A stretch of DNA of 63,468 nucleotides, counting the filler, from Pelomyxa schiedti (lineage: Eukaryota; Protista; Evosea), in the NCBI GenBank assembly GCA_020536535.1. It is 17 parts of 17 records of this genome, joined end to end, with 100 filler letters (N's around TTAATTAATTAA, not from the genome) between each part and the next. Parts side by side here need not be neighbours in the genome. Positions count along the whole stretch, not along the records: positions 23,865 to 27,827 come from JAHLWZ010001659.1; 16 more parts are not named here. One strand, given 5' to 3'. Position numbers and translations under genes: made by a program. Positions 23,076 through 28,759 of the stretch are shown here, piece after piece. Position 1 is the first letter of the stretch. Every line of letters starts with the position of its first letter. Under the pieces are notes generated by a model that did no database searches, had not been told where the DNA came from, and worked only from the letters and a program-made list of their open reading frames with translations.

Positions 23076-24316
23076 TGGACTAATACTATGTTGCTTTGGA
23101 TGGTTTGGGTGTGCATATCTAGCATTTCCACACTTGTCAAAATGCATTGAAGGCACGCATTCCTGTGGAAGTGTGGCCTGTCACTGGTCTTCAGAAAGTG
23201 GTGTGAGCATTTCCAGGGGTCTGAAGAGCAGTGGCTATGTTCAGTGTGGAAAGGTGGTCAAGTGGTTGTTTCACGTAATCCATCCCATTCACTGTGCTTG
23301 CAACATTCGGTCAGAGTGCAACAAAAGTAAGTGTGTCAATGTGGAGGATGCTGCGTGTGTTTCCTCAAGTTACAGCTGAGTTTGCCAATGAGCATTGTTT
23401 CCGTGTCACCACTCCACACCACCGTGTCAATGCCCACTCGGGAATCATGGGAATCACAAAGGAAAACATACGATCGTTGTTTCTTGTTCCACGACTCCGA
23501 AATCAACAAATGAAAGAAAAAAAAAAGTGATGTTGTTTTGCTGGGAGAAAATGATCACGAAATGGTGTTGAGTGTTCATAGGGAGGGAGTCCTCGCACAC
23601 TCTGTGGGTCAAGAGGAAGACGTGGCAGTTGTTGGTCCTGTGGGATTGCGGCGGCCAGGGAAGGATGCTGCGATGTTGGCGAGGCACCTTCTGATGTGTC
23701 CGGTAACGTCGTTGTCAGTTATGGGAGTATTGTTGCTGTCGTCGGTCACGGTGCTTGTTGTTGTNNNNNNNNNNNNNNNNNNNNNNNNNNNNNNNNNNNN
23801 NNNNNNNNTTAATTAATTAANNNNNNNNNNNNNNNNNNNNNNNNNNNNNNNNNNNNNNNNNNNNCCTGCAGCCACATATGTTATGTTATTCAGATGGTGG
23901 ACCTGCTGACAATCTATCACCAGGGTACACTCCCTCTCCCATTTTTACCACCACTCAACAACAGGGACAATGGATGCCACTGACTAATGGAGTGCAATGT
24001 CAGGTTTTACCCACCATTCACCCACTTCACCTTGGCACCAACACCCCTTGCTTTGCTCTTGCGCCCTACACTTCTGCTGTACAAAGTTTAAGCACACTGT
24101 GGACTAGGTCTATCTGTTCTATTTACTCTTCCACCTGTGAGTAATAACATACTGTCACACCAGCACCCACAGAATCACAGTAGCACGTGCCGGCACCAGC
24201 AAAGGGAACTGCACACTTCCATAATGCAAAACTGCAGCTCGGCGGCAGTACACAACAATAGATCCTTTCTTTTTTTCTAAAATAAAAAGACCATTGGTGA
24301 ACACAGGCAATCAAGG

Positions 24317-27300
24317 CTAGAAACCCTCAGATTGGGCTAGTTGGAATAGCAGGCTGAAGTATCCTTTGTCAACTCTCACTGGCATGGGGATGGTGAATCC
24401 CAGATTCATGAACACATCCTTAATTGTACTGCCAGGACCCCTGGGCCACCAATTCTGGTGCTCCACAATGAATACATATCCATTGGGCTTGCATATCCTC
24501 ATGGCTTCATCTGCTATTTCTCCCAGTGAATTACCCCAGCTGATTGACATGCTGAACACAACCACATCAAAGTGTCCAGCTGCAAGTTCTGTGTGAATGA
24601 AGTTGCACTTGTGAATTGGGAATTCATTAGTGGCAGCCTCATGGTCGATATTGGTGACCTTGGTTGGTGAGTGTTAGTGTTCTTTTTTAACTCATGGTTT
24701 CTTGTGGGATGATGTATACCTGGACTCGGGGATGAGCTTGCATAAATCTAGCAAGTGAGCAACTTCCACAGCCCATGTCAGCAACTCGTATTTCTTTTGC
24801 TTCAGGTAATTTCCCCATGATGTAGAAGATGAGATTGGCCGCTCGTCTCACTGGTACAGATGAGAGTCCCATTGATTGGAACCTTGCATCCTGAAGTGCA
24901 ATGAACTGGAACCACTTTTGCCTTTTCTCTGGCTCCCTCTGAATGAGGTCATGCAGCTTTTGTGGGTTTTCCTTTTTCAGTTCGTAAAGGAGGGTGAGAA
25001 AGTCCTGAGAATTGAGAGCCGGCAAGTGGAAGCGTCGAATGAGGAGCTCAATGAAATGCAAATACATTCCAGTTTTGCCAATTTGTGGCTCCGCGGAAAT
25101 TACGAACCGGTTCTTGATTCTTTCTACGTCTGGAACTTCCTCCTTAAAAAATTCCCAAGGGTGCAGTTTAGTAGGGTCCCAAATCACTTCTGGGTGGAAA
25201 AAAACAGCAAGTGATTCCTCTTGCCTTTCCTCATCCTGATGTGTGTTAGAAATAACTATTGAATGGCAAGCGCATTAACCTCTTCATCGTCTTCACGGGG
25301 TTCTGATGATTTTGTGAGGCATGGGTCCAGTGTTACCCTCCCTCTTGCCAACGAAAGTGCTTCAATCGGATTCTTTGCAAATTGATAGGCATATGAGTTC
25401 AGGAGAACAATGGGACAGCGATCAGGGGATGTAGCCCACTTGAATGCACGCCCAATATCTTGAACAAACGAAGAATATGTGAAAGAATTTGTCTTGCTGG
25501 GGGTATAGCGCGCACGCAGATCAAAAAGCTGGAATTTCTCCGGCATTGTGTCACCCATCCTCGCCTTGATCGAACATCAGAACTGTGAAATGAATGTCAC
25601 AGGTACCTTTTCAACGAGAATAAGCAAGCATGCCCTCTTCAAACTCTGATAGCCAGTGAATGGGGGGAGAATACGAGCCCACTTTTGTGAAACAGATATC
25701 TTGCTTTCACCATCAGAATCAACAGCATCCTGAATGCAAAAGAATTCCTCCACTCCCAATGCTGAAATCAAACAGGACACCAGATTGCCGTAGAACTTTG
25801 CAAACCCAGAAGGCAACCGAACTGCCACAATTCCTCCGTGGAGGAGTGTGTCCACAGCTTTGCTCTCTGAGCCTCCCAGCTGAGTCCATGGTGGAATTGC
25901 CAAAGGAGTCCCAGTCGGATGCTTCCTCAGGTACAGACTGATGAAAGCAGCTGCATAACTCATGAGGCTCGCCACAGTATATCTGTCTCTGGAAGCTAGC
26001 AGTCTATTCTGTAAAGCTGCATCAAGGTTCAGAGTATTGATCAAGGTATTCATGTTGTGCTCAAGGTCATTGTTGGAAATAATATGAGGCGGATTTTCAG
26101 CAATGAGCTTCTCCCTTCCATAATATTTGGCTTGGTGGTCAATTTTTGTTTCCCACGCATGAACGTGAGATTTCAACAGGTCCGAGTCGATCTGATTCCA
26201 TGCAGTCGCTGAAACTTGGATTGTGAGAAAGTTGGACCCAGGGTTCTTCAGTGCCTCTTTGAGTATTTCTCCAATCTGTGAAAACTTCACTTTTTTCTCA
26301 CCATCTTCCACCTCCTGGCGCATCTTCACACCCCAATGGCATTCGTCGTGTATCATGAGGAAGAAGTAATTTGGATCATCCTTGAATTCAGTGGCATTGA
26401 CAAAAAAAGCGTTCGACGCTTTCTTACTTTCTGAGTAGTTATTGCCCTTGATTACGTGAATGTGGACGTTTGGACGTATTCCTCCATTTATTCTTTTCAG
26501 GTGTTCTTCGAAATGGGAAACTCTCTCGCATGTTTGGTTGAAAAGAGTGTTCCGTGGTGGAACAAGGATCAGTACCTCCAGGCACTGGCAGTTCTCTGGC
26601 AAAGGAAAGCTCATGAGAATTTTTTCCAGGAATTTCGAGGCTTCCCCCCTCTGAGAATCATGAGGATCGTATCCGTTGGGAGTAACTGCAGACGCGGACG
26701 CGGGAGTGGGAATGGACACGGAGGTGGACAACGATGCCAACGTAACTGCGGACGTGGACGCGGACGCGGACGTGGACGCCGACGTGGACGCCGACGTGGG
26801 CGTGGACGTGGACGTGGACGTGGACGTGGACGTGGACGTGGACGTGGACGTGGACGTGGACGTGGACGTGGACGTGGGCGAGGTAGTCACCATTTGAATC
26901 TCAGACAATTGTAATCCAAAACATTCCAGTGCATTCGCAAAGGCACTAAAAATATGTTTTTGAATGAGCTTCAAGTCTTGGGCAGTAAGTCTTGCAGAAT
27001 TCTTAACACTGTTACAAAGAAAAGAAAAAAAAAAGGAAAGGATATCACAATGTGCTTTTTCCAATGTGAGGCATGAGCCTGCTGGCTTTTGAATGTTTTC
27101 GAACACTCACGGCATTGCCAGAAGGGAATTGCCTCTCCGCTGTGTTGCGCTGAATTGTGGACTTTGAAAGAATTACGCTTATCGAACGCTGCACGACACT
27201 TGTTGCATATAATCAGTTGTTTTCTTCCATCACTTTTTGGTGGAGAGACTGCAACCGACGAGGAAACCTGAAAGGGTGAATATCAGTTGTATCAGTTGTT

Positions 27301-27369
27301 ACGACAACGCACCATTGTTTCGTCTGGCGCATCATCGCTCCCATCATTACTTCCCTTCACTATGTTCAT
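24317..27369 (-). CDS. 2x C2H2 zinc finger + circularly permuted SF2 helicase + Rrp8-like SAM methyltransferase (multi-exon)
   Basis: Spliced from ATG 27369: CNKCRAAFDKRNSFKVHNSAQH and CRECSKTFKSQQAHASHWKKH; ILVPPRNTLFNQ (Ia), IHDECHWG (II), VSATAWN (III), LVEK|ARMGDTMP (V), VQDIGRA (VI), then SAEPQIGKTG (I); then VADMGCG..FDVVVFSMSISWG..EAMRICKPNGYVFIVE, stop 24317. Introns with GT-AG ends and ctaac branch sites keep the frame. Confidence 0.85.
26755..26880. repeat. (GGACGT)n hexamer array encoding a TS/AS linker
   Basis: Tandem gtggac/gcggac units; translates to TSTSTSTS..ASTSAS between the zinc fingers and the helicase. Confidence 0.9.
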
Positions 27370-28759
27370 TTACTTTCTTAAATGTCGTTGGGCAACTCTG
27401 TTTACACAAACAAGTTTGCTTGTGGGTGCAAAGTAAAAATTAACTTTTAGTTTGACTTTCGGAAAATTCGGCTGTTCTTTTTTTGGCCTACACACCTGAC
27501 TCAGCAATTCAAAAAGTGGACACTCCTAAGGCCATTCTCGAAAAAAACTTTTCCAGTCTGTGCAGTGGACACGACCTCAAACCTCTGTTCGGGCCAAATA
27601 CTGCAACTGTGTTGTGGAAGGACTTCAGTACTGGTTGTACTGACTAAACAGAGCCGATGATGGTCAGGGGCCAGGTCCAACTGGAGTCCAGTCTCCCCAA
27701 AGACAGGTATGAGAACTTAGCCTTTGTTTCAAAACTGCAGTGGACCAAAAACGGATTACCGGGGGGTGTCCGGTTTACTCCCCCCAGGCTGTGATTTTGG
27801 GGGGGTGATTCGCTTTGAAAATGCACTNNNNNNNNNNNNNNNNNNNNNNNNNNNNNNNNNNNNNNNNNNNNTTAATTAATTAANNNNNNNNNNNNNNNNN
27901 NNNNNNNNNNNNNNNNNNNNNNNNNNNGCTGGAGGTTTCGAATTTGAAAACAGGGATTGTTGGTGTGGCTTCTGTTAAGTGGGTATTTGTAAGCCTGAGA
28001 AATGTACAAATATCGTCAAACTTTAGGCGCATCACCGAAAATATCATCGTCGTCATCTCCAAATATGATTTCTACTTGTGGCTTTTTGACCTCTGCGGGT
28101 GCCTGTGCCGTCTTGGCGGGAGGTTTTTCTGGAAAAAGAGTTGAGTAAAATGAGCAATTGCATTCGTAACTATCGACTGTTCTACAATTCAAGATGCAAA
28201 TAAGGGGAGAAGAGTGCGCGAGTCAAGATAAGCATATTTAAATGGTAAATGAGGTGATCAACTTGATCCTACTGAAAACACAGGCGACGGGGAAAATATG
28301 TCATCGTCGTCATCGAATAGGGACGTCGACGCTTTTTTCTACATGTAGTTGTTGGTTTTACTTCCATTGATTTGCTATTTAAAAATCGGAGTTTCATTTT
28401 ATGTCGGTGTGCCGTTTCGTGAGACGTGGGCACACCGTCGACATCCAGTAGAACGAAAAAAACGATTCAATGAATTTCATCAGTCAAGAGAATGATTCCC
28501 TGGGGCAGGTCCGCTCTTCAACGGAACGTGGCACATCTATCGAAAGAGCTCCTTCTGGGTATCCCATAGAAGAGAAAGCCAATCCCTATTTCTCAGATTA
28601 TTCTTAGAGATGCTTTTCCAAAAAGCCCTAAAGTTATCTATGACTTCGATAACGCTTACTGGGCGAATGGTGGGTATTGCGCAACCGTGTTCATCAACAA
28701 ACTGGCATTGTTGAGAAATCAACTAGACGGCTGATCCAATCACGGCAGGGATGTTGACC

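Follow-up and report, generated by a model that had tools for sequence, protein, structure and literature searches.

A predicted single-chain fusion of a circularly permuted GREB1-type helicase and an Rrp8-like methyltransferase in Pelomyxa schiedti

Animal GREB1, whose domain layout has been described, O-GlcNAcylates the oestrogen receptor ER-alpha, and the helicase that it carries is described as catalytically inactive (PMC7968844). Here we analyse a gene of Pelomyxa schiedti, found in a window of 63,468 nucleotides (nt) that consists of 17 parts of this genome joined by filler letters, which is predicted to unite a helicase of the same circularly permuted superfamily 2 (cpSF2) family with a different enzyme; it lies on the minus strand of the piece derived from JAHLWZ010001659.1 (positions 23865–27827 of the window, ∼45% G+C). 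Rrp8, or nucleomethylin (2ZFU for the human protein), is the 1-methyladenosine (m1A) methyltransferase of large-subunit rRNA, and Type ISP and Type I restriction-modification (RM) systems, such as LlaBIII (4XQK) and HsdR of EcoR124I, combine an SF2 duplex translocase with an S-adenosylmethionine (SAM) methyltransferase in one chain or complex. The protein encoded by the Pelomyxa gene (∼931 residues, referred to as the window protein) comprises two C2H2 fingers, a low-complexity linker, a cpSF2 motor and a helical connector to a compact methyltransferase. Judged by its sequence, the helicase is a member of the cpSF2-GREB1 family, and the methyltransferase is an Rrp8/nucleomethylin-like class I SAM enzyme.

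The likeness to GREB1 and GREB1L lies in the shared cpSF2 family (PF20692), recognised by Pfam on three exons including the one that bears the C-terminal P-loop, and in the order of a Zn-binding N-terminus, a cpSF2 helicase and a C-terminal group-transfer enzyme. In GREB1, however, the C-terminal enzyme is a TET/JBP-associated (Fringe-like) glycosyltransferase, whereas here it is an Rrp8-like SAM methyltransferase; Pfam gave no match to any glycosyltransferase family, the C-terminus being a class I methyltransferase, and the window protein is therefore not a GREB1 orthologue. It differs further in keeping intact the helicase motifs I, II, III, V and VI, in contrast to animal GREB1, whose helicase is described as inactive (PMC7968844), in its plain C2H2 fingers, where the N-terminal domain of GREB1 is undetected by Pfam and the GREB1 N-terminus was not compared directly, and in its size, which is about half that of human GREB1 (1949 residues). 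With Rrp8 the methyltransferase shares the motifs VADxGCGxCxLA, xDVxVFxxSL and KPxGxxxVxE at an identity of only ∼22–25%. Rrp8 is free-standing, nucleolar and without a helicase, whereas the present enzyme is fused to a motor and has several paralogues per genome in Pelomyxa. The RM systems appear among the fold matches and are echoed by weak ResIII matches, but their motor is unpermuted, and their N6-adenine amino-methylases, target-recognition domains and nuclease have no counterpart here; prokaryotic relatives were not found either.

Motif order and domain assignment

In the spliced protein, the order of the helicase motifs is Ia (VLILVPPRNTLFNQT, 26575–26531, residue 229), II (HDECHWG, 26350–26330, residue 304), III (VSATAWNQ, 26215–26192, residue 349), V (LVEK/ARMGDT, 25618–25547, residue 548, with a 42-nt intron at the slash) and VI (QDIGRAFKW, 25462–25436, residue 586), followed only then by motif I, or Walker A (RFVISAEPQIGKTG, 25109–25068, residue 689), all on the minus strand. 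The strand–P-loop–helix element comes after motif VI instead of before motif Ia. This order had been proposed in an earlier sequence-only reading of the locus, and each motif named there does occur on that strand, at the position proposed or close to it. The window protein and 10 relatives have a single GKT each, which in the window protein and in every complete relative lies ∼390 residues past DECH, and no P-loop stands ahead of motif Ia. Distant family members carry RFxLxAxPQxGKTG ∼335–390 residues after DECH, and the match to ResIII begins no earlier than position 55 of that model, past its own P-loop.

D-E-C-H, S-A-T, VEKARMGDT, DLRARY, A-E-P-x-I-G-K-T-G and the methyltransferase D-M-G-x-G are invariant in five full-length relatives, and in the alignment the window exons bear the same motifs as these proteins. 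Q-D-x-G-R of motif VI is present in all members except one Pelomyxa model with a local gap there; the gene model of the paralogue P0002 seems to be without the motif VI segment. The methyltransferase domain shows the class I hallmarks VADMGCGSC, VTNIDH and FDVVVFSMS, with motif I (VADMGCGSCSLA) at 24785–24750, motif IV (FDVVVFSMSISWG) at 24571–24533 and a further stretch (RICKPNGYVFIVE) at 24499–24461.

Pfam was read against its curated cut-offs of 26.2 bits for cpSF2-GREB1, 27 bits for Methyltransf_8 (PF05148) and 27 bits for zf-C2H2_4. The cpSF2-GREB1 family, predicted earlier for this locus, matched three exons separately: the 509-residue exon (E 6.8e-18, 65.1 bits, model positions 35–247), the exon at 25280–25564 (E 8.4e-6, model 391–431, at 25.1 bits slightly below the cut-off) and the exon at 24720–25235 (E 3.7e-10, 39.5 bits, model 674–704 of 716). 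Model positions 674–704 are the C-terminal strand–P-loop–helix element of the family, and full-length relatives score 145–188 bits against the family profile. The finger exon matched generic C2H2 families alone at E up to 10, among them zf-C2H2_4 over two stretches (E 8.9e-6, at 26.4 bits just short of the cut-off). In the last exon Methyltransf_11 (E 3.7e-6) was found, together with a match to Methyltransf_8 below the cut-off (E 3.8e-4), and five relatives exceed the Methyltransf_8 cut-off (P0002, 60.4; P0016, 51.7; P0006, 42.1; P0017, 38.2; P0001, 32.8 bits). The spliced methyltransferase domain of the window scores 137.6 bits against a hidden Markov model (HMM) of its relatives. NCBIfam gave only generic sub-threshold matches to the methyltransferase (BioC, UbiE, CpaM), and so offers no competitor to Rrp8.

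Structural comparison supports the Rrp8-like assignment made earlier from the sequence. In comparisons made on Pelomyxa homologues rather than on the window protein itself, 2ZFU was the top PDB sequence match (4.4e-9 versus 0.24 for the next) and the top fold match (Foldseek E 7e-8, template modelling score (TM) 0.71), and VIA gave it a Z of 17.9 (next 15.8) over 191 residues at a root-mean-square deviation of 2.9. AlphaFold2 predicted the helicase–methyltransferase core of P0001 with a mean local confidence (pLDDT) of 74.9 and a predicted TM (pTM) of 0.66, and the helicase part alone, from a 23-row alignment, with 79.9 and 0.82. In the AlphaFold2 homologue model the displaced P-loop element is assigned by DSSP as a strand and a long helix (pLDDT 88–96), and the sheet assignment implies that this strand is paired with other strands; the model fits an element that completes the RecA-like sheet.

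The predicted helicase fold is that of a generic SF2 motor, many of which are alike at Z 8–10 (XPB, RecG, Mfd, HsdR, INO80, DHX36, RIG-I-like, Dicer), and the choice between RNA and DNA is not decided by it. The fold alignment to EcoR124I HsdR starts at chain residue 266, downstream of K220, the Walker A lysine of that protein; a start of this kind would be foreseen for a motor with no P-loop element at the usual N-terminal place. Sequential structure aligners stop before the displaced P-loop. Against the PDB, a profile built on the 66 residues of the P-loop segment gave chance matches only; this segment is too short for a profile to reveal kinship with the standard motif I.

Relatives and gene structure

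With the 509-residue exon as query, HMMER was run exhaustively over 1.84 billion representative proteins and returned 13 matches, seven of them with E < 1e-10; the window protein itself is not among the collections searched. True matches are KAH3764601 (P0001, 47% identical to the exon) and KAH3732779 (P0002) of P. schiedti, the transcripts P0003, P0014 and P0015 of Mastigella eilhardi, and Logan assemblies; P0016 (Pelomyxa), P0017, P0018 and distant proteins of Echinamoeba exundans and Amoeboaphelidium protococcarum were gained in addition from a profile search. A word-based protein search with P0002 recovered Pelomyxa paralogues only, and a metagenome scan two weak loci only. In a pattern-based scan, viral contigs and prokaryotic genomes gave pattern matches without true relatives; within the limits of such a scan, a bacterial origin is unsupported, as is the link to giant viruses (nucleocytoplasmic large DNA viruses) that had been raised earlier.

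The fusion is conserved within a small clade that comprises amoebae and further eukaryotes. Pfam found cpSF2 followed by Methyltransf_8 or Methyltransf_11 in P0001, P0002, P0016, P0015, P0006, P0017 and P0018. In the Echinamoeba and Amoeboaphelidium proteins the Methyltransf_8 match after the P-loop is only faint; the distribution is patchy, taking in Archamoebae, possibly Tubulinea and aphelids, and environmental eukaryotes. That the modules belong to one polypeptide, as first proposed from the window, is borne out by P0015, a single Trinity transcript of Mastigella with helicase and methyltransferase (and a faint finger-like match), by P0006, an uninterrupted open reading frame (ORF) of 1024 residues on a 3.2-kb contig (L001:131-3205, Logan SRR30674853), by the end-to-end alignment of the spliced window protein with P0001, from the fingers (P0001 residues 413–490) to the C-terminus, and by the single window exon that holds both P-loop and methyltransferase motif I. 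The finger pair also occurs in P0002 and P0016, at residues 265–312. Maximum-likelihood analysis groups the window protein with the Pelomyxa paralogues, as their sister (support 97/98), and places Mastigella and P0006 next to this pair; such a position would suit a source among the archamoebae or related amoebozoans.

At least five paralogues are present in the P. schiedti genome, namely three in tandem, P0002 and P0016. The three lie head to tail in JAHLWZ010000275.1 (L002:8001-20497), and the middle one (1346 residues), which has no Pfam record, aligns to the window protein by tblastn. N-termini vary across the family: in P0006 an OTU cysteine-protease (deubiquitinase-like) domain replaces the fingers (24.9 bits versus a cut-off of 23.3), and residues 58–136 of P0018, a JGI metagenome protein, faintly match EcoEI_R_C (E 4.6e-4, below the cut-off), the C-terminal domain of a Type I restriction R subunit. 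Two further eukaryotic loci on Logan contigs (L003:868-2971 and L004:3969-6740) show the same broken-ORF pattern, in which small exons come after a large one for the helicase, and are likely to be orthologues with short introns; close to the second, on the opposite strand, is an ordinary ResIII helicase gene. Homologues are named in databases either 'hypothetical protein' or, wrongly, 'metallophosphatase/5'-nucleotidase'; the GenBank name of P0002 (KAH3732779.1), 'bifunctional metallophosphatase/5'-nucleotidase', looks like an annotation error, as Pfam found no such domain. In keeping with the earlier remark that no described protein of this combination was known, the literature searched, which did not extend to the paper that founded the family (Iyer et al. 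2013, NAR 41:7635), contained no account of a cpSF2 protein fused to a methyltransferase.

The gene spans 24317–27347 on the minus strand, with five well-supported exons and a tentative first mini-exon. Its minus-strand open frames stand in a row (49, 509, 100, 166 and 82 residues), and the five fragments into which the ORF track, as noted earlier, does split the gene are rejoined by four GT..AG introns of 47, 42, 44 and 61 nt, each in phase 0. Translation of the candidate joins gives a coding sequence of 2796 nt, that is 931 codons and a stop, with no internal stops. CTAAC branch-site motifs are clear in the 44-nt and 61-nt introns, 10–14 nt ahead of the acceptor.

The fingers, CNKC..H..H at 27207–27142 and CREC..H..H at 27114–27052, are encoded by an exon at 27049–27267 that is supported by zf-C2H2_4 and by alignment to P0001, P0002 and P0016. 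The intron that follows (47 nt, 27002–27048, GTGATA..TTAAG), identified from a reading of splice pairs and the P0001 alignment, is the only GT..AG pair that links the finger and helicase frames without a stop, and the P0001 alignment is ungapped over this junction. The large exon (25607–27001), assigned by cpSF2-GREB1, encodes a (Thr-Ser)n linker, motifs Ia, II and III, a helical insert, VAVRLPS and the first part of motif V (LVEK). Removal of the next intron (42 nt, 25565–25606, GTACCT..TCAAG) yields VEKARMGDT, which is unbroken in P0001, P0002, P0006, P0015 and P0007, and the exon at 25280–25564, placed by cpSF2-GREB1 and alignment, continues with ARMGDT, DLRARY and motif VI.

Splice signals and tblastn breaks define the 44-nt intron (25236–25279, GTTAAT..CTAAC..ATCAG): segments of Pelomyxa proteins end and resume at 25283 and 25238, and the junction rebuilds ..ESLAVFFHP, continuous in relatives. 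From ESLAVFFHP the exon at 24720–25235, again matched by cpSF2-GREB1, runs through Walker A and the helical connector to methyltransferase motif I. Inside the methyltransferase domain, the 61-nt intron (24659–24719, GTATAC..CTAAC..CCAAG) is supported by tblastn breaks at 24717 and 24661 and by junction homology, its removal giving RVQ/VTNIDH (compare QIQVTNYDH in P0002). The last exon (24317–24658; Methyltransf_11, Methyltransf_8) comprises the post-I stretch VTNIDH, motif IV, the stretch that follows it and the C-terminal strands, and ends in a stop at 24319–24317.

At the 5' end, the stretch of the finger frame that follows its upstream stop contains no ATG; the acceptor sequence ccctttcag ends at 27268. 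An ATG at 27347 is out of frame with the fingers, from which it follows that a further 5' intron is needed and that this end is tentative; a phase-0 join through an extra short intron would connect the two. The tentative initiator mini-exon MMGAMMRQTKQWC (27309–27347), placed from frame and splice sites with no homology support, would be followed by an intron of 41 nt, or of 35 nt with a donor at 27302. A near-perfect to perfect hexanucleotide microsatellite, (GGACGT)21 on the plus strand at 26750–26877 (Tandem Repeats Finder: period 6, 21.3 copies), reads TSTSTS... on the minus strand and codes for the (Thr-Ser)n/(Ala-Ser)n linker between fingers and helicase. It is missing from P0001, where the alignment has a gap, and its length is probably polymorphic as a consequence. 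Rfam and repeat scans of the piece gave the microsatellite only, and neither a convincing ORF nor an RNA family or repeat turned up in the flanks (23865–24316 and 27348–27827), so that the gene appears to occupy almost the whole piece.

Mechanism, substrate and rival explanations

It is somewhat probable that anatomy and mechanism hold together as a whole, with the window protein acting as an ATP-driven nucleic-acid methyltransferase. In such a mechanism the fingers and motor would bind nucleic acid, ATP hydrolysis would move or remodel it, and the tethered methyltransferase would methylate a base normally buried or paired. We infer that the motor is active and feeds nucleic acid to the methyltransferase. 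The functions suggested earlier from the sequence, targeted base methylation of DNA or RNA or else an RM-like or silencing role, are likewise hypotheses. As to substrate, RNA is plausible though itself short of an even chance, DNA is doubtful and protein more doubtful still; RNA is placed somewhat ahead of DNA because the only clear relative of the methyltransferase is the rRNA m1A enzyme Rrp8. The variable N-termini (C2H2, OTU and the faint EcoEI_R_C match), together with the Pelomyxa expansion, suggest a targeting or conflict role over one housekeeping rRNA site.

Several observations weigh against this reading. The window's own split pieces score only 20.8 and 12.5 bits with Methyltransf_8 (E 3.8e-4 and 0.13), below the cut-off, as the domain is cut by an intron; of the families expected at this locus, Methyltransf_8 is passed by the five relatives, while the window pieces and the zf-C2H2_4 match fall below their thresholds, and the Rrp8 assignment leans mainly on full-length homologues and on structure for this reason. 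That the displaced P-loop sits beside DECH is a prediction, and DNA and RNA motors tie in the structure search without discrimination. At least five Pelomyxa paralogues, three of them in tandem, are a poor fit to a single housekeeping rRNA site, and a protein substrate is possible given that animal GREB1, the only studied relative, modifies ER-alpha (PMC7968844). The exon model is predicted from the DNA; its 5' exon is tentative, and the (TS)n tract could conceal another intron. The fusion architecture is in its entirety a prediction.

An ORF track in five fragments, with exon joins predicted from the DNA and a tentative 5' end, would also suit a decayed or mis-joined locus, either a pseudogene or an adjacent pair of helicase and methyltransferase genes with the mere look of a fusion. 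This explanation is nevertheless very improbable, since canonical phase-0 introns of 42–61 nt bridge each break and rebuild conserved motifs, the 931 codons are stop-free after splicing, and the fusion recurs in the Mastigella transcript, the 1024-residue ORF and the Pelomyxa gene models. The exon at 25235–24720 holds the P-loop as well as methyltransferase motif I, so that no gene boundary lies between helicase and methyltransferase, and we reject two separate genes; a pseudogene is likewise rejected, in view of the clean spliced frame and the conserved motifs. We regard it as highly likely that the locus is one intact, spliced nuclear gene with three modules in one chain.

With the same architecture, the substrate might instead be duplex DNA, the protein being a single-chain translocase–methylase like those of Type ISP and Type I RM and serving epigenetic marking or defence against foreign or mobile DNA. 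This is possible, if unlikely: HsdR of EcoR124I, LlaBIII, the Snf2-type motors DDM1, INO80 and Rad54, XPB, RecG and Mfd are fold neighbours, and the weak ResIII matches, the classical C2H2 character of the fingers, the faint EcoEI_R_C match of P0018 and a Pelomyxa-specific expansion with three tandem paralogues, common in conflict systems, all point the same way. The methyltransferase, however, does not belong to the C5 enzymes and has no (D/N)PP(Y/F) motif such as N6/N4 DNA amino-methylases carry, and its sole specific relative is the rRNA m1A enzyme; no nuclease domain was found in any family member and no prokaryotic or viral relatives in the scans, and the double-stranded RNA motors MDA5, RIG-I and Dicer score equal to the DNA motors. 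Methylation of protein, with the helicase serving mainly as a scaffold or as a platform that binds nucleic acid, a role proposed for animal GREB1, is improbable. GREB1, the only experimentally studied cpSF2 protein, does modify protein and has a helicase described as inactive (PMC7968844), the OTU domain of P0006 hints at protein-directed chemistry in some members, and the class I fold includes protein methylases, with CARNMT1 and SAMTOR among the fold matches. Yet the nearest relative of the methyltransferase works on rRNA, and the family-wide invariance of the ATPase motifs favours a working motor over a scaffold.

If the window protein is taken as an ATP-driven nucleic-acid methyltransferase, a broader proposal may be put forward, tentatively and at rather long range: the family would represent the GREB1 module in a catalytically active state, a eukaryotic single-chain protein whose permuted SF2 translocase, directed by variable N-terminal modules (C2H2 fingers, OTU), would carry an Rrp8-derived methyltransferase over RNA or DNA to write ring-nitrogen methyl marks such as m1A, for amoebal genome or transcript defence or marking. 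The family is very rare, with about a dozen clusters among the 1.84 billion representative proteins, and is unnamed in databases. To our knowledge no other Rrp8-type methyltransferase is fused to a motor, and such a fusion would add to the routes by which m1A-type marks are known to arise. What the permuted, apparently dead helicase does in GREB1, a hormone-response protein that has been studied extensively, is unexplained; the same helicase with every ATPase motif and another enzyme provides a natural test of whether cpSF2 is a general carrier of base or protein modifiers to nucleic acids. Were the active-module proposal true, the ancestor of GREB1 would have acted on nucleic acids, not on proteins.

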